DNA of 64,000 nt. Origin: Klebsormidium nitens. Taxonomy: Eukaryota; Plantae; Klebsormidiophyceae. How positions within the stretch are numbered: the first letter of the stretch is position 1; each line of letters begins with the position of its first letter. Below the pieces are notes generated by a model that did no database searches, was not told the DNA's origin, and saw only the letters and a program-made list of their open reading frames with translations. The stretch lies in the NCBI GenBank assembly GCA_000708835.1, contig DF237179.1:62001-126000 (forward strand), written 5' to 3'. A program made the translations under genes and the position numbers. Of this stretch, positions 5,701 to 15,526 are shown piece by piece.

Positions 5701-7167
5701 ATGATCCACTAACAGTCAAAGTGAACGATAATTTCTCCTTGACCTTCTTGTCTATCACTTCTGAAGCAAGAAAACAATCTGAATCAAAGGTTTGTAGACA
5801 GAGTGCCAGGTACCAGAGTGCCTGAGGCAGAGTCGTTACAACGGCAAGCGTGAGCAGACACATACCAATTCATGCCAAACCGAAAGTCTCGCTCAGACTG
5901 CAATGAACTCAGTAACCTGATAAAGAGGTCGCAGCTCTTTTCAATTGACATGTCACAAATCATAGATAACGCCTTTCCAGCGTCCACAGTCAAGCACCAC
6001 TCTCTCCACAACTTACTCACCTGCCGCTTGCAGTAGTTATCCCGGCGGCCAAACCGGCTCAGCCCGACCTGGTCAACGTCCACAGCATGGATCGCCGCCA
6101 GCGTTTTGGCCATCTCCTCATACATTGTGCGCCGCACTGGCGGCGGCACCTCTGGCAAACCAGGGTCCAGGAAGATGCGGCCCTCCACGTGTTCCATCAC
6201 ATAGAAGTCAGTGCCTATAACCGAGGCGTCAGTGCACAGGCACATGACTTTTGGAACGGGGACTGCGGTCCCATTCAGGGCCTTGAGGACCTGCATAGAA
6301 GGAGTGATGGTGAATAAAGGTGAACAAGGTTGAAAACTTTTGCAAGCTGGCCAGCTGAGATGTTACATGAGAGTCCACGGCCGGTCATGGTTCGTGTCGA
6401 GTCCTTGGAAGGTCATATTTGAAGTAAGCCTTGAGAATTGGTGGTGTGAGCTTCTGATTGAAGGGCTAGACATGCAGGCACGGTCTGGCAGGATTCAGAA
6501 ACTTCAGGAAAGACCATCTTAATGTAATCGCCAGGAGCTATAACTTTTATATGAGTGTCAGAGTGGTAAAGTACCATGATATCGCTCAAAAACAACTTCC
6601 GTCATCAGATTTTTTATGAGATATGACGTCGTCTGACAAAACCCCGAAGGAAAAGTAGAGTTCCATGGCTTTGGGAAATTGCAGCACTTGTCCATTACTT
6701 TAGAAACTTTGCTTCCAATAAGCCTTCACACTGGAACGTTTCTCCGGAGGTTTGACTTTTCGTACACATCCCTTTCAAGGAGTGCTTTGGAGGATTGAAG
6801 TGAACTCTTATTTCAGTTGGGGGACATCCACATGGGCAAAGAAAAAGAGGCACTGGTTGCATGAACAATCTACAATCAAGTTTCTCACCTGATACTCTCT
6901 GTCCACTGCATGCGCAGACTTCAGGAGCTTTCCAGGGGGCTTCTTCCGCAGCACAAAGCGCCCCCCCTCCCCGGCCGGTGACCTTACGTCCAGCAAGAAG
7001 GTGGGGTTTGATTGGCCATGCCCAAACTGACCGACTGTAAGTTTGGTTTCTGGATGCTGAGGGAAGTGAGCCACATTGCTTTGCAGAAATCGAAGGAGCG
7101 CTGACTCATCAAACCGGTGCGCTGCGCGCACAGGTTCAATGTTTCCTGAGATCGAGAGAGGGGCCAT
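2776..7167 (-). CDS. ACAD10/ACAD11 (IBR3-like) APH-kinase + acyl-CoA dehydrogenase; 5 exons found, 3' part missing
   Basis: Exons 7167-6889, 6290-6021, 5476-5270, 4749-3580, 3021-2776, all GT-AG phase 0. Motifs QFGHGQSNPTF, VLRKKPPGKLLKSAHAVDREYQV, HGDYRLDNLVFHP and VLDWELSTLG, then the ACAD N-terminus AFLLEHIYPAE...GLWNLWVP...GAGLTNLEYAHCCE. The expected next exon (APEVFNC.APDTGNME type) was not found in 1-2775. Confidence 0.92.
3715..4362 (-). repeat. Coding higher-order tandem repeat: 177-bp/59-aa unit, about 4 copies, containing 8 SHAxQ[KR]Y[AS]P motifs
   Basis: GGGCATACTTCTGCTGGGCGTGGCTCAGATCGTTCGA occurs at 3981 and 4158 (177-bp period). The translation alternates about 31-aa and 28-aa units. 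Confidence 0.95.
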
Positions 7168-8258: not shown

Positions 8259-8559
8259 CCTACGATACTTACCGTACGCGCGTGTAGGTATAAGCATGTT
8301 CATAAACCGACATTTCTGCCTCCTATGACCCCGATCACGTCCCGCAGATGCTAAACTTCTGATGCAATATCGGAACTTTCAAAACCAGAGGGGCCTGAGT
8401 TGCAAAAGCTGCAGCTGTGATCAGACCTGTTCAGCAGAACATACAGCAAAATGCTGTGGAGCAGCAGGAAGCCATATTGATCTGATGCCTGTTTCAGCTG
8501 GGAATTTCTATCCATGAGGCAAAAGGTAGGAATGTACTAGTAGCCCTTTTCCTTGACAC

Positions 8560-11500
8560 ATGGAGTGCACATTCTACTGCAGCCCCGCTGTTTTGCAAAA
8601 AGAGCTGAGTCGGCGGTTTTCGCAGGATCAGAATTGTTCAGGATGTTTGCTTAGCCCCAAAGCTGCACCACCCTTGCATCAGCATGGCACCTCTTTTCTC
8701 AGACACAAGTTACACAGAAAGCCCTGCTTCAGATTAGTGGGGACTTGTCAGCTCACAGCAAATGGCCAAGGCGCCAGTGAGCAAGTGGAGACACGAGGTC
8801 TGGAGCAAGAAGCACAGAAGGTGAGAGATCATTCCAACTCTTCCACCAGTGTTCTGTCGCATTTGCTCATCTTGCGATCAGCTTCAGCAGTGTTTGCTTG
8901 CTTTTGTTGGTTTAAAGTTCTGTCTCTGAGTCTTGGGTTCCCCCCTACCAGATTGTTTTCCAAAAAAAACTCACCTTGCTGTCTGTCTCTAACATATATT
9001 TTCGCATTCTTTCCACGTTCCTTGCACTCAAGCAGGGCTTCATGGTCAGAAAGGGCTTCAAGCATAAGGATGTGCAAAACGGGCATGATTAATCTTACAT
9101 CACTGTTGTTGACGCTCACAACTCCGTCATGCTTACTGGCTTTTGAGGCTTCTTCAAGCCAATGGTCTCTAGTCCCCATTCTCTCAGAACAACCTTCCAA
9201 TATCTCACTTGCTTCTTGCAGTATGAAAGTCCCTCCTTCCTTCCAAGCCGCCAGCAGCTCAACATGCCCCCCCGTGACGAGCGGGTTTCTTACACCCGCA
9301 TCCAGGGGCTCAGCACGTTCCCCCCCGAACGGCTCTACGACAAAGTCGTGATGGTCCGCTGTGACTGGAACGTAGAGATAGGCGTCCATGAGGTCAAAGG
9401 AAAGGTGTTCCGAGATGATACACGAATGAAAGCTTCGGTGCCAACTCTTCAGTACTTAGCGGGGGCCGGGGCACGGGTGGTTGTTGTTAGCGAGTATGGG
9501 ACTCCGAGCAAGGGGCAAAGGATGCAGCATTCTTTGAAAGTGCTGGCAGGTGAGGCTTTCCAAGACGTGTTGTAAGAAAACCAGAGGCGGTTCACTTGCA
9601 TCAACAATTCAACCAAGCTTCTAGTCATTCATCAAAGAGCTTTGTGAACCTGGTGGGGGGAATAGTGCCAGCTGGATTCATATTGTCCATAGAAAAAGCT
9701 GGGGCCTGTGTCAAAGTCGCAAGCCATCTAGGGCCACATTTAAAAAAGCCGATCATCCACCTTTGAATAAAGTAGCGGCGTCTTAGTGGCGGTCAGCAAC
9801 CTTTCTCTCATGAGTGCCCTTGCAGCGCAAGGTGCACGGCATCGGATGCTAAGTATTGAGCTGTCCCATCTTGCCTTCTGCTTTAGCTGACTTCATGTCG
9901 ACTTTGCCACCTGCGCTACTGAACAGCACGTGTCAATTCACCAGCAAAGGACAGATCTGCCAATGGTGGCCAGTTTGTGGCTGCCCGATCGAGTCGCTCT
10001 GAAGGTGCTACTGGATTCAGCTGTGATCAGCCACATCTTGTGCATCAGTGTCAATTGTCACACAGTTCGTACTGCTGTTTTTCAGAGAGACTGGCGTCGG
10101 ATCTCGGCCAAGAGGTTATGATGGCTGGCGACTGCATCGGCGCTGGGGTCGAGCGGGATATTGACGCGCTCCGGCCTGGACAGATCTTGGTCCTGGAGAA
10201 CGTGCGCTTCTATAAGGTACGATTCGACGAAATGCTGGTGGTGTATGCCATGTTTGCATTACAGTTCAAAGCCACTGCGTAAAACAGGTCTTAGATACGT
10301 CTTTTTGAAGAGTCGCTGGCATCGGTGTACAAAGTGGTCCTCCCTAAGTTGTCTGGTTGGTTCTTACCTACAAATGATTCGTCTAAAATGTCTTAACTTT
10401 TGATTTTACGCCCCAATGCTGGGGGGAGGAGATAGGCATGTATTTATCGGGCTTTGATCTATCATGTCCTGCGAGAGCTATGCTGAGCGCACCTCACTTC
10501 TGCCTGGAACGTTGTCGTTCCGCTCTGGCGGGGCAGAGTGGGTCAGACGATCAGAACCAGAAGCTGCTTTACTCTTACCCCAAATAGAGAGCGCGGAGAG
10601 AGGATTCAAGCGACCCCATTGCCTCTCGTTTACAGTTCTCACTTCCACGCGCTTGCCCATCTGACTTCTCTCCTTCTTACAGGAATAGAAGGCCAACGTT
10701 CTGGTCTTCTCTCAGAACCCACGTTAGAACAAAGGCCAATCGTCGTGCCCCTATTTCTTTCTTTAGCCACCTTCGGCGTTTCTTGTTAACTCTCACTAAA
10801 CCAGTTTGGCAGGTTATAAAGGTCATCAAGCCTTTCGCTCCAGTTCTCATTTCTAAGCTTGCCCATCCCACCTCTCCGTCTTACAGGAGGAGAAGGCCAA
10901 CGATCTCGTCTTCGCTCAAAAGCTCGCCTTTCGAGTCGACGTCTTCGTAAACGACGCCCTGGGGCCTTGTAGCCAGGCGACCGCCTCTGTTTCTGGGGTT
11001 CCCGTCTTCGTGGGGCGGAGAATTGCGGGTCTCCAGCTCGAGAAGGAGCTTCGCTACTTGAACTCACTGACGTCCTCCGCAGCAAGGCCCCTGCTTGCGA
11101 TCGTAAGTGACAACGTTCGTTGCATGGTGTCTTTCGTTCGCCGCATTGTAAACTGCCTCAATCTTTCCAGTTCTTGCACACGTTGATTCCGTTGATTCCA
11201 CCGATCGGGCGGCAGAATCCTGAGAAACATGCTATTGATCATGCGAAGTTGACGTTGGAGACTTTGCAACATGGTTGCGCTCTCCTCGTTTTTTGCAATG
11301 TCGCAGTGCGTGTTCTCTGACCTTGAAACAAAAAGCGCCTGAGCGAATGACGGCTCGAATTACTCGCAAAGACCGCTCTGCTCTGCTTGATATGGTAGCA
11401 CTGGTGTTTCGCTTCAAGTAAGGGTATCCAACGGTTCAAGTGATGCAAAACCTTCCCGTGAATGCTGTTGAATGACAGAAAGCTCAAACCTTTAAAAGTG

Positions 11501-14500
11501 AATCAGAAGATTGACGTCGGACAGATAACCTACACCTCTCGTCTCATCCAGGTTGGTGGAGGCAAGCTGTCGACCCGGTTCCCTCTTCTCAAGTCCCTCA
11601 TCGCCCACCAAAAGTGCGACGCCATACTCCTTGGCTCCGCTCTTTCAGCTCCGTTCCTTCGGGCCCTGGGCTGGAGGACGGGCGGAACCCCAACGGAAGC
11701 GGGCTCAACGGAAAGGGCGACGGAGCTGCTCGAGTTGGCAGAGAAAGAAGGGGTGGAGCTTGTTTTTCCCGACGACGTGGTTTGCGGCGAGGCGCAGGTG
11801 CATAGCGCCAAAGTGAAAATATGCACTGCGCGGCACGTTCTGCACGGTGAGGGCTATGCGTTGTTTGCGCATCTCTCGTGCTTGTTGTGCAATTCCTGTT
11901 TTGTCCTTTCCTCTTTAATTTCGTGCACCTTTCTTCTGAATCATCCCGAATAGCTGGTGCTGAGTGAGCGATCGGTGGCACAGTATAAAAGCGGGGTCTG
12001 CTTGTCCGTCCATTACAGCGTTTGTATTCCCGTGAAAGACGAACGTTTGGTATCGTGCTGTCTTGGCCGTAAATGATCAGCAGGGCCTTTGAACAAAGCA
12101 AGATGGCATAGTGTTGATGTGGAGAGAACTCGCCCATTAGTTGCATATTTCGCAACAGGCGCTCACGCCGCTACTTTCTCTCTCGATCAAGCGTATCGGA
12201 AGCTGAGCTTTGGTGTCGAAGCTGGAACGGCGACCTCGAGCTGAACAAATGCAGCAACGCGTCGCCCTCTCAGCTCCCACTGTCGCGAAACCGTTCTCGT
12301 GCTCCCCACTTGACGGAGATTTTTGTTTTGCCAGCGCAGAGTGGTCAGCTATGGACATCGGCCCTCAGACGATCGACCATTATGCGCGACGTCTACGAAA
12401 AGCGAAAGTAAGCGCTGATCAAGTGAAAGCTCAATGTTATTCTCGAGAATCTGGTCGTAGTACCTGCAATCTGCTCAATGATTTTCCTCGTCCTGCGGAT
12501 CCCTGCTTCTCTGGAGCCTTGAGGGCCCTTTGCACTCGCGTCTTCAAGGTATAACTCCGCAAATTCGGGCTCGTAGAGTTACCACACTCGAAGATTCCCC
12601 GCTGCTTACCTCTAAGGTTTCTTCTGGTTCAGAAAGTTCTCTTTCTTAGGGCTTCAGGGTTCTCTGCGAAGGATTTATCGTGCTGCTCTCCCGCTTTTCT
12701 TTCGGCGTCGCTGTCTTATTGTCGCTCGTGTTCAACCGTACCCCTCATTCCGTTCCTAGTCATTCCGCTCTGCTTTCTCCAGACCGTCTTGTGGGTGGGC
12801 GCCGTCGGCTTCTCCGACCGGAAGTCGTTCGCCAACGGAACGCTGTCGCTGGCAGAAATCGTCTCGGACCTAACTTGGGCGGGGACATGCACCAGCATCG
12901 TGCACGGAAAAGACGTCGAAAAGGCGCTCAAGTCTGTGCGCGGGAAAGTCTCGCACGTGGCCCTGGGGGGGTCTGCTACGGTGACTCTACTGACGGGGGG
13001 AGCGCTTCCTGGATTAGCAGCACTGGACGAGGTGAGGTGCCGGCTGCTTTTGAAAGTCTCAACCTGGAGCATTGTGTTCGAAGCGTTTCTGTAGAGGCCG
13101 AGCTTTTCTAACCTGTCAAATGCTTCACGGTTCCTTCTCTTTGCCTTGCGCAACCAGTGGCATCCGCACAAGGGCACGGCGGAGGACACTGTCGGCACTG
13201 GCAAGGGAGGACACACTCCGCCGACGCAGAGAGAATGAAGCTGTTTTACTCGCCTCAGGCAGTGCTGTCGATTCCGCGCGACTCAACTACTCCCAACTGA
13301 AGCGGTCTGACTTCGGCAACAATCTAAGCTGGCCGCGTTTCTAAAGCCAACTTTCGGTAACATTCCGAGCTGGCCGCATTTTAAAAGCCAACTTCTGGTG
13401 CCTCAGTGGGTCTCATTTAGTTTCACATATTTCGTGGAATAGGATAAGAGTGACGTCATTTTGAGGGACGCGCTCGACGCCTGACGTCAGACTTGTCATG
13501 CAGGAGCCCACGGGCCCACCAGACTGGACAAGCGTCTTCAGGGATCCGACGGCCTCGTTGACCGTCGACGTTGGCTGTGGTAAGACAACACTTTTGAGGC
13601 TCGGCCTTATGCTTCTTGACCCCAGAGGCGTCTCCTTTCTGTTCAGTGCAGTGCGATTTTCCCGCAATGATGCTGACCCGCGATGAGCATCGTTAAACCT
13701 TGAAGGCTCATTCCAGGGTTCTTACGAGATTCGTCTTAACCTTCAGCACTCTTGAAAGAGCGGCTTCTGGACGTCTCAGAACAGCGGTTGTTTCGTGAGA
13801 TTACCCGTCAAGGCTGTAACCCTATCAAGGTCTTCATTTCCATACGAGGACCCAAGAATGTCGACCTTCTTTCCCCAACCAGCTGTTCGGTAGGAATGAG
13901 TAAGGTTGACTCCGTGCTCTAAACGACTATCTGCCATCGTGCTTGGCTTTCCCTCGAGTTCCCAATGTTTCTTTCCACGGCTCTCCCAAGTCAATTCTCC
14001 TGTTTACTTCTTGTATCGCGTTGGTTCTTCAGGAGACGGCGGCTTCTTGCTGGAGCTGTCCGGCAAAGGGTCCGGAAACTTTCTCGGACTGGACCTCTTC
14101 GGACACCTGGTGGACGCCGCAAACGCGCGTGCGCAACGTGAGGGCCGGCAGAACCTGTAAGCGCTCAGTTCCTCCAAGCAAGTACATTCTAAACCAAGAA
14201 GGGACTTGTCCGGCATAGACTTTGTACAATTCCTTGGAGTTTCCCTCTTTGAACACCTGGCAGACGCCGCAAATGGGCGCGCGCAACGTGGGGGCGGCAG
14301 AATTCGTGAGCACCAGAACCCCTTCAATCGAATGAATCTAAAACCAGAAAAGGAGGTGTCGTTAGAGAGTTCGGACCTCTTTGGACACCTGGTAAACGCT
14401 ACGAGTGCGCGCAACGTGAGGGCCGGCAGAACCTGTGAGCACTCGCCCTTGCAACTGTCCTTTCGAGGTAAAGCGGGTGGTAGGGGTGGATCGGGTGCCT

Positions 14501-15526
14501 TGCTTCAGACTCAGACACGTCAGAAAAACACTTCGGAGAGCCGCAGGAATGTTTGATTGATTAGAGGGGAGTCTGTCAATAAGACCCGCTGTGGCGAATC
14601 TGGAGTTCCAGTGTATTCTGTCATTGTGGTTTTGTTTTATATAGATCGTCAGAGAAATGCACGCATGATATGCTTCGCACTTAAATAAAGTTAGTGTAGC
14701 ATTCTTTGGTCCCCTTGGCATCAATCTATCTTTTGGGACCTCAGCCTTCTCGACTCTTATGGACATCTGTGCGCTCAACGTGCTTCGCTTCTTCCGTCCG
14801 GCCCAGTTCACACCCGCACAGCACAACGAGAACGCGCTCATGACCAGCACACGACTCTCAATCGTGACGTCACCGCGGGCCGATACCAACTGTCGTTGCT
14901 GACGTCATCACAGGTACTACGTGGCAGCCAACGCGACGACATCCCTGGGACCCATGCTGAGCACGTATCCCGGCGCCTTACAGCTGGTGACGATCCAATG
15001 TCCCACGCCCCAGTTCGAGGCACGTGGCCTCGGACGATTGGTTCTGCGGCAGCCCCTGGTGGAGGCGATTACTGAAAAATTGGTTACGGGGGGACGGGTG
15101 AGTCCTCTTGTCACGTGCAATGGTTGTCTTACCCGCTTCTTTATCGTGTCCATAACGACTCTGAATGTCTTAACATAAAGAAAGTTTCCTCGATCTGCAG
15201 TCCTCTTCTCATGCGCAAGCTTTAACGATCTGGTTTCAGCGGGTATGAGCACCCAATGTGCAACAATAGTATAATGTGTCCAATCATCCTTGTTGCAGTT
15301 ATTCGTCCAGTCCGACGTCAACGACGTTGCAAGCAGCATGCTAGAAGAGATCCAGAAGCACGGCAGGGGACGCCTTGTTAATGATGAGGGTTTTCAGGGG
15401 CCTGGAAGCAGTCCGTTGACTCTATCCTCGTGGAAGATCAACCCGTTCGGTATACCCACTCAATGGGAGACGCACGCCTTGTCCAAAGGACGCGACATGT
15501 TTCGTCTAATGTATCGGAAACATTGA
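8560..15526 (+). CDS. Phosphoglycerate kinase-like + tRNA m7G46 methyltransferase (TrmB/Methyltransf_4)-like fusion, about 719 aa, possible organelle transit peptide
   Basis: Exons 8560-8820, 9222-9549, 10086-10216, 10887-11102, 11552-11846, 12340-12407, 12783-13031, 13504-13579, 14033-14156, 14914-15097, 15299-15526; phases consistent, 2160 nt. PGK motifs: VMVRCDWNV, DDTRMKASVPTLQYL, LVLENVRFYKEE, DVFVNDA, MDIGPQT, LPGLAALDE. TrmB motifs: DWTSVFRDP..LTVDVGCGDGGFLL, NFLGLDL, YVAANAT, LFVQSDV, NPFGIPTQWE. The first exon is less certain. Confidence 0.88.

Follow-up and report, generated by a model that had tools for sequence, protein, structure and literature searches.

Analysis of a 64,000-nucleotide (nt) stretch of Klebsormidium nitens DNA (assembly GCA_000708835.1, contig DF237179.1, positions 62,001 to 126,000; hereafter the window) revealed an 11-exon gene on the + strand, between 8560 and 15526 of the window, in which a phosphoglycerate kinase (PGK)-like domain is followed in the same reading frame by a TrmB-like domain. 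The model was built from the sequence and checked by script; it comprised 719 codons with consistent phases, all ten introns were GT..AG with pyrimidine-rich acceptors, and the sole stop among 720 codons was the last one. The G+C content of the region was approximately 52% and an in-frame TGA (8554–8556) lay just 5′ of the ATG at 8560. An earlier interpretation of this DNA, made from the letters alone (the sequence-only reading), had proposed that phase-consistent splicing joins the PGK C-terminus to the TrmB-like domain, and the model gave exactly this join: at 13031|13504 the protein reads LPGLAALDE|EPTGPPDW, such that the PGK-like domain runs straight into the TrmB-like domain.

Two sets of sequences were compared with the gene. 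Four runs, each from a different study, supplied Logan contigs, which were aligned on 8540–14539 of the window. An exhaustive protein search with exon 7 returned two close relatives, both as open reading frame (ORF) fragments from unspliced DNA; their contigs were L001 and L002, from two Logan runs, and L003, a JGI metagenome contig of 43.5 kb. The features of the gene were as follows:

8422..8559, + strand: 5′ untranslated region (UTR), 5′ limit approximate; the run contigs extend 103–118 nt 5′ of 8540, which puts the end near 8422–8437
8451..8540, + strand: four short upstream ORFs (2–10 codons; starts at 8451, 8485, 8514 and 8532) in the contig-covered 5′ UTR
8560..8820, + strand: exon 1, start codon and 87-codon N-terminal extension, basic and with scarce acidic residues; joint 8820|9222 in four runs
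9222..9549, + strand: exon 2, remainder of the N-terminal extension, then the PGK-like start (DWN, Arg38 equivalent, SEYGTP); PF00162 at 2.3e-11, 66% identity to L003
10086..10216, + strand: exon 3, PGK-like, LENVRFYK with the Arg122 equivalent; Pfam, L003 and RNA joints
10887..11102, + strand: exon 4, PGK-like, NDALGPCSQATAS in place of NDAFGTAHRAHAS; Pfam, solved PGKs, L003 and RNA joints
11552..11846, + strand: exon 5, start of the PGK-like C-lobe, GGGK with Lys215 kept and Lys219 changed to Arg; Pfam, L003 and RNA joints
12340..12407, + strand: exon 6, PGK-like (MDIGPQTID), with an alternative acceptor 5 nt upstream (12335)
12783..13031, + strand: exon 7, end of the PGK-like domain (WVGA, HGKDV, LPGLAALDE); Pfam, solved PGKs, L003 and RNA joints
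13032..13503, + strand: intron 7, 472 nt, spliced out in all four runs; in-frame stops, including 13092–13094
13504..13579, + strand: exon 8, TrmB-like start up to S-adenosylmethionine (SAM) motif I (DVGCG); RNA joints and L003
14033..14156, + strand: exon 9, TrmB-like, end of motif I and motif II (GDGGF..., LGLDL); joint 13579|14033, 64% identity to L003
14914..15097, + strand: exon 10, TrmB-like, motif III (ANA) and the remodelled motif CPTPQFEARGLGRL; 82% identity to L003, the motif being identical
15299..15526, + strand: exon 11, TrmB-like C-terminus (LFVQSD..., TQWE...), stop at 15524–15526; 61% identity to L003, same C-terminal residues

Each of the four runs contributed one contig (1768–1937 nt) which contained exons 1 to 9, with eight introns spliced at GT..AG; past 14159 the loose contig end continued with the beginning of exon 10. 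The contig of run X10 continued for 509 nt past exon 9, of which 30 letters were visible, and this length would fit exons 10 and 11 plus approximately 97 nt of UTR. The joint between the two domains (13031|13504, ‘skips 472, GT..AG’) was present in all four runs. The run record merely guesses RNA, but as DNA cannot yield such joints the runs are RNA in practice. The sequence-only reading had named RNA across this junction as its first check and a pair of separate transcripts as the outcome that would speak against it; the junction was used in every run. The locus is therefore a single gene with a single spliced mRNA, and the fusion is real and expressed.

The runs differed at the exon 6 acceptor. 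This was at 12340 in X1 and X8 (joint 11845->12339) and at 12335 in X2 and X10 (joint 11845->12334). Use of 12335 adds 5 nt and shifts the frame to a stop at 12871, so that the product, of 464 residues, lacks both the PGK C-terminus and the TrmB-like domain. The tandem acceptor CAGCGCAG (12332–12339) is kept in all three organisms (approximately L001:638–645 and L003:9122–9129) and may represent regulated unproductive splicing.

Pfam and structure searches were made with single exons, so that each query was a domain fragment. PF00162 (PGK) matched exons 2 to 7 collinearly, covering profile positions 6–378 of 379, and solved PGKs were the top matches for the PGK-like exons. PF02390 (Methyltransf_4) matched exon 9 (profile 10–53, E 0.084) and exon 10 (profile 59–113, E 0.028), also collinearly; these matches were weak because only fragments were scanned. 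This exon-by-exon result agrees with the domain architecture expected by the sequence-only reading. Alignment of exon 10 with E. coli TrmB was ungapped over 40–41 columns (hhalign E 0.005). Searches of solved structures with the TrmB-like exons 9, 10 and 11 gave nothing significant, and ESM Atlas matches to exon 10 scored no higher than 0.81, which is noise. The TrmB-like domain began at a position corresponding to E. coli residue ~56, and the N-terminal arm that carries R26 is therefore missing. At the other end of the protein the first 60 residues were basic (Arg, Lys and His 13; Asp and Glu 3), and tblastn found no convincing match to exon 1 in L003.

The PGK-like half was compared with solved PGKs by alignment, using human PGK1 numbering, and every motif loss listed by the sequence-only reading was confirmed. 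SHLGRP is SEYGTP in the K. nitens gene, which by position replaces His62 with Glu and Arg65 with Thr; FGTAHRAHAS is LGPCSQATAS (His169 to Ser, Arg170 to Gln, His172 to Thr) and WNGP is WVGA (Asn336 to Val). The GGGD(S/T) motif is HGKDV, in which GGG is replaced by HGK and Thr375 by Val while the Asp374 equivalent is kept. Additionally, GGAK...DK is GGGK...TR, with Lys215 kept and Lys219 changed to Arg, and Glu343 is Asp (Asn in L003). Equivalents of Asp23, Asn25, Arg38, Arg122 (read from LENVRFYK) and Lys215 were present, as the same reading had held; of these, Arg38 is Cys and Arg122 is Gln in L003. As both arginines are lost there, the entire 3-phosphoglycerate basic patch is unconstrained in the clade. 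The relatives shared the PGK-side changes (SQFGTP, LGPCSQAFAS, WVGG/WIGA, QGKDL/HGKDV) and also conserved Lys215, the GKD loop and MDIGP of the C-lobe. Neither the basic patch of EC 2.7.2.3 (Arg38, His62, Arg65, Arg122, Arg170) nor its nucleotide and transfer site (Lys215, Lys219, Asn336, Glu343, GGGD-Thr375) was intact. Judged from these residues, classical PGK activity is very unlikely.

In the TrmB-like half, alignment of exon 10 with E. coli TrmB showed that PDPWHKARHNKRR has become PTPQFEARGLGRL (D144T, W146Q, H147F, K148E, H151G, K153G and R155L, with R150 and R154 kept). The degeneracy of this motif, including replacement of the proposed catalytic Asp by Thr, and the retention of DVGCG were thus as the sequence-only reading had described them. 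Alanine at R26, D144, H151, R154, R155, D180, T217 or E220 of E. coli TrmB reduces activity to <10%, and changes at D144, R154 and R155 abolish it (PMC10130221). Of the residues required in E. coli TrmB, R154 is kept, D144, H151 and R155 are replaced (D144T, H151G, R155L) and the R26 region is absent. Because essential residues are replaced or missing at positions where alanine cripples the E. coli enzyme, classical tRNA m7G46 activity appears very unlikely. The SAM-binding elements were retained: motif I (GxGxG) and an acidic motif II were both present, and DVGCGDGG and LGLDL were conserved in L001 and L003. DVGCG/DIGCG, LGLDL and ANATT were common to the K. nitens gene and L003, as was an identical run of 26 residues surrounding the changed motif, and the former catalytic loop was the best-conserved stretch of the protein. 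Conserved cysteines lay in motif I (GCG) and, in QCPTP as compared with FFPDP, at a position where TrmB has Phe. An invariant remodelled motif together with SAM motifs would be at least as compatible with a pocket that still works in altered form as with a dead one.

Alignment of the relatives with the gene showed that L003 contains exons 2 to 11 in the same order and on the same strand (61–82% amino-acid identity) and L001 contains exons 5 to 8 (73–83% identity). Splice sites were kept at every border. At the nucleotide level, similarity was confined to the exons to within a few bases, and the introns did not align. The ratio of nonsynonymous to synonymous divergence (dN/dS, Nei-Gojobori) relative to L003 was 0.145 in the PGK-like part (427 codons) and 0.207 in exons 8 to 10 of the TrmB-like part (121 codons); relative to L001 it was 0.18. 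Synonymous divergence (dS) was ~0.9–1.3. With dN/dS of ~0.15–0.2, both halves are maintained by purifying selection; this is not a gene in decay. No full-length fusion was present among the best 150 matches to exon 7, which besides the fragments of the two relatives were canonical PGKs, and two scans of metagenomes with profiles of exons 10 and 7 yielded no relatives. A word search with exon 10, whose length window leaves out full-length proteins, gave no candidate.

The architecture is already known. A fusion of PGK (PF00162) and a TrmB-like domain (PF02390), of unknown function, was named PGK4B by Foflonker & Blaby-Haas (Mol Biol Evol 2021; PMC7826186), who reported it in early-diverging streptophytes, K. 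nitens being named, and in land plants except Arabidopsis, with rice LOC_Os10g30550 as the representative. This bears out the suggestion in the sequence-only reading that land plants have PGK plus Methyltransf_4 proteins. The terms ‘catalytic’ and ‘active site’ do not occur in PMC7826186, and the splice isoform is likewise not discussed there. In expression papers LOC_Os10g30550 is labelled “phosphoglycerate kinase” or “tRNA methyltransferase, putative”. A literature search for Methyltransf_4 plus PGK found nothing. The K. nitens gene has the N-terminal PF00162 and the C-terminal PF02390 of PGK4B in a streptophyte, and the spliced junction, the open frame and the lack of a conserved internal start place both in one polypeptide; no difference from PGK4B could be demonstrated. 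Two organism labels among the runs had identical sequence, as would fit the K. flaccidum/K. nitens renaming. Most probably, the gene is the PGK4B already reported from K. nitens, or else a strain copy.

The fusion was also compared with other proteins. Like canonical PGKs (human PGK1; PDB 7zy7 was the best solved match) it has the full collinear fold signature over profile 6–378, and the K. nitens gene keeps the Asp23, Asn25, Lys215 and Asp374 equivalents and the C-terminal LPG.AALD; unlike them, it has His62, Arg65, His169, Arg170, Asn336 and Thr375 replaced and HGKD for GGGD, and Arg38 and Arg122 are lost in L003. With TrmB/Trm8 (E. coli b2960) it shares a class I methyltransferase core, TrmB-type motif order and spacing, GxGxG, the acidic motif II and R150/R154, whereas it is fused, lacks the N-terminal arm (R26), carries D144T/H151G/R155L and has lost most other basic residues of PDPWHKARHNKRR. 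PGK3 and PGK4A are also non-canonical PGK-like subfamilies of the green lineage (PMC7826186); they are stand-alone proteins with arsenic-related neighbourhoods, whereas the present gene has a fused methyltransferase-like domain and no such neighbours. In bacterial PGK-triosephosphate isomerase fusions (for example P0070) a second domain also directly follows the PGK C-terminus, but both partners look catalytically standard, while here the partner is a relative of RNA methyltransferases and both active sites are remodelled. A further protein among the PGK matches, P0003 (797 residues), consisted of two complete canonical-looking PGK units in tandem.

These observations suggest the following mechanism. 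One promoter would give one spliced mRNA and one 719-residue protein, made up of an N-terminal extension of ~120 residues, a two-lobed PGK-like domain and a linkerless TrmB-like domain. The TrmB-derived domain would be the working end: with motifs I–III kept it probably still binds SAM, and its invariant remodelled pocket CPTPQFEARGLGRL may have a substrate different from tRNA G46. The PGK-like domain would no longer phosphorylate 3-phosphoglycerate, because the basic patch is gone and drifts between relatives. It may instead be a ligand- or nucleotide-binding, substrate-presenting or regulatory module. With Lys215, MDIGP and the GKD loop retained, its binding of an adenine nucleotide may have survived. 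The domain would also take the place of the tRNA-binding arm at the TrmB N-terminus, which makes it a natural candidate for substrate presentation or regulation. Methyl transfer to a changed substrate seems slightly more likely than pure ligand binding. We offer this mechanism as a whole, with a SAM-binding TrmB-like working end, a new substrate and a PGK-like helper module, only tentatively. That the gene is a PGK4B-type fusion of a streptophyte alga is the best explanation overall, and we give it a probability of roughly 0.55.

Several points weigh against this explanation. Any SAM binding or activity is predicted from motifs alone, and in B. subtilis TrmB the D144 equivalent hydrogen-bonds the SAM adenine, so that Thr at this position could weaken SAM binding. 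The per-exon PF02390 matches, made with single-exon queries, were under the gathering score. The match of exon 11 to the C-terminus of E. coli TrmB was not significant (z 1.2) and the D180, T217 and E220 equivalents (QSD, TQWE) were for that reason assigned by eye, although their order and spacing are plausible. Half of the run contigs (two of four) carried the frameshifting splice form. Finally, orthology to rice LOC_Os10g30550 is argued from architecture, lineage and the statement in PMC7826186.

Other readings of the locus were weighed against this evidence. A pair of adjacent genes, or an assembly artefact, with a TrmB-like protein starting at ATG 13498, could be suspected from that in-frame ATG, 6 nt 5′ of exon 8, and from two TGACGTCA sites 15–53 nt upstream of the exon. 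This is very improbable: the GT..AG joint 13031|13504 occurred in four independent runs, contig depth showed no increase 5′ of exon 8 beyond a weak intron signal, the exon order is the same in two other organisms, and the ATG is not conserved: L001 has GTG there, preceded by an in-frame TAA at a distance of 15 nt, and L003 lacks it. The spliced junction, the unconserved ATG and the exon order in the relatives largely refute two separate genes. The degenerate motifs, the frameshifting splice form in two of four runs and the decayed exon copies in introns might equally be taken as signs of a decaying pseudogene that is still transcribed. This reading is hardly credible and is refuted by the open frame of 719 codons, the conservation of all splice sites in the relatives and dN/dS of 0.15–0.2 in both halves at dS of ~0.9–1.3.

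The sequence-only reading had itself favoured a true double pseudoenzyme, in which neither domain is catalytic and the protein would serve for ligand sensing or as a scaffold. Its further proposals are speculative, namely that the protein senses metabolites or SAM, binds RNA, couples glycolysis or the Calvin cycle to translation, or is targeted to an organelle. The absence of classical-activity residues from both domains stood up to analysis, as several residues essential to each classical reaction are replaced; the drift of the PGK basic-patch positions between relatives favours it too, as does purifying selection, which shows that some function is retained. Total loss of catalysis did not stand up as well, given how strongly the SAM motifs and the remodelled pocket are conserved: the former TrmB catalytic loop is the best-conserved stretch and the SAM motifs are intact, which is typical of a working pocket, and Lys215, the GKD loop and MDIGP of the PGK C-lobe are also conserved. 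We regard a double pseudoenzyme as unlikely, though as an alternative to be taken seriously; a changed activity is judged about as probable as a lack of any. It is improbable that the PGK-like domain remains a kinase or phosphotransferase for another acid, in an arsenate-detoxification route as proposed for PGK3 and PGK4A. These cousins of PGK4B adjoin ArsJ and GAPDH3, which suggests a possible arsenic link, and a Chlamydomonas PGK3 mutant is arsenate-sensitive (PMC7826186); the Lys215 and Asp374 equivalents are also kept here. However, no ArsJ or GAPDH gene adjoins the fusion, whose neighbours are an APH-family gene and, downstream, an ankyrin gene; the phosphate-binding arginines, which 1-arseno-3-phosphoglycerate would also need, are lost, as are the Asn336 and Thr375 equivalents. 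More speculative still, and a long shot, is that PGK4B is a new enzyme in which the PGK-like domain holds or delivers a substrate other than RNA, perhaps arsenite or another thiophilic metalloid or else a small acid, for methylation in the TrmB-derived pocket; if true, this would connect the fusion with the reported association of PGK3 and PGK4A with arsenic.

Relative to the published PGK4B, the present analysis adds the residue-level degeneracy and its conservation, estimates of selection and RNA proof of the fusion in K. nitens; it does not describe a new kind of system. The fusion has been kept from streptophyte algae to crops, and as descriptions of activity both labels of the rice member, PGK and tRNA methyltransferase, are very probably incorrect, for Klebsormidium-type members at least. 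This calls for caution in pathway reconstructions that count PGK4B as a Calvin-cycle or glycolytic PGK. Purifying selection combined with alteration of both classical sites makes the protein a well-defined target in the search for a new function, which might be SAM-dependent chemistry on a new substrate or regulation through nucleotide or SAM binding.

Small tandem duplications seem to be common in the introns of the fusion gene. The following decayed exon copies were found:

10668..10717, + strand: decayed copy of the exon 4 acceptor region in intron 3 (repeat family D3)
14202..14444, + strand: two decayed copies of the 3′ part of exon 9 in intron 9 (14202–14295 and 14373–14444; repeat families D1, D2 and D4)

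An intronic copy of the start of exon 5, containing a stop, was present at L003:7300–7374, and intron 7 of the K. nitens gene contained two tandem copies of a 41-nt unit that were 83% alike (13312–13393). The palindrome TGACGTCA occurred nine times in the window, with 1.03 occurrences expected by chance. Four of the nine were intronic and formed two pairs just 5′ of exons 8 and 10 (13451–13458 and 13482–13489; 14865–14872 and 14900–14907). Before exon 8, a one-mismatch version was found in L001 and none was seen within 30 nt in L003.

The upstream neighbour (5787–7167, - strand) is divergent to the fusion gene and matched Pfam APH on two ORF pieces, which are probably exons of one gene. In L003 a glutathione-peroxidase gene (PF00255; L003:14527–15419, - strand) lies downstream instead of the ankyrin gene, and the downstream neighbourhood is therefore not conserved.

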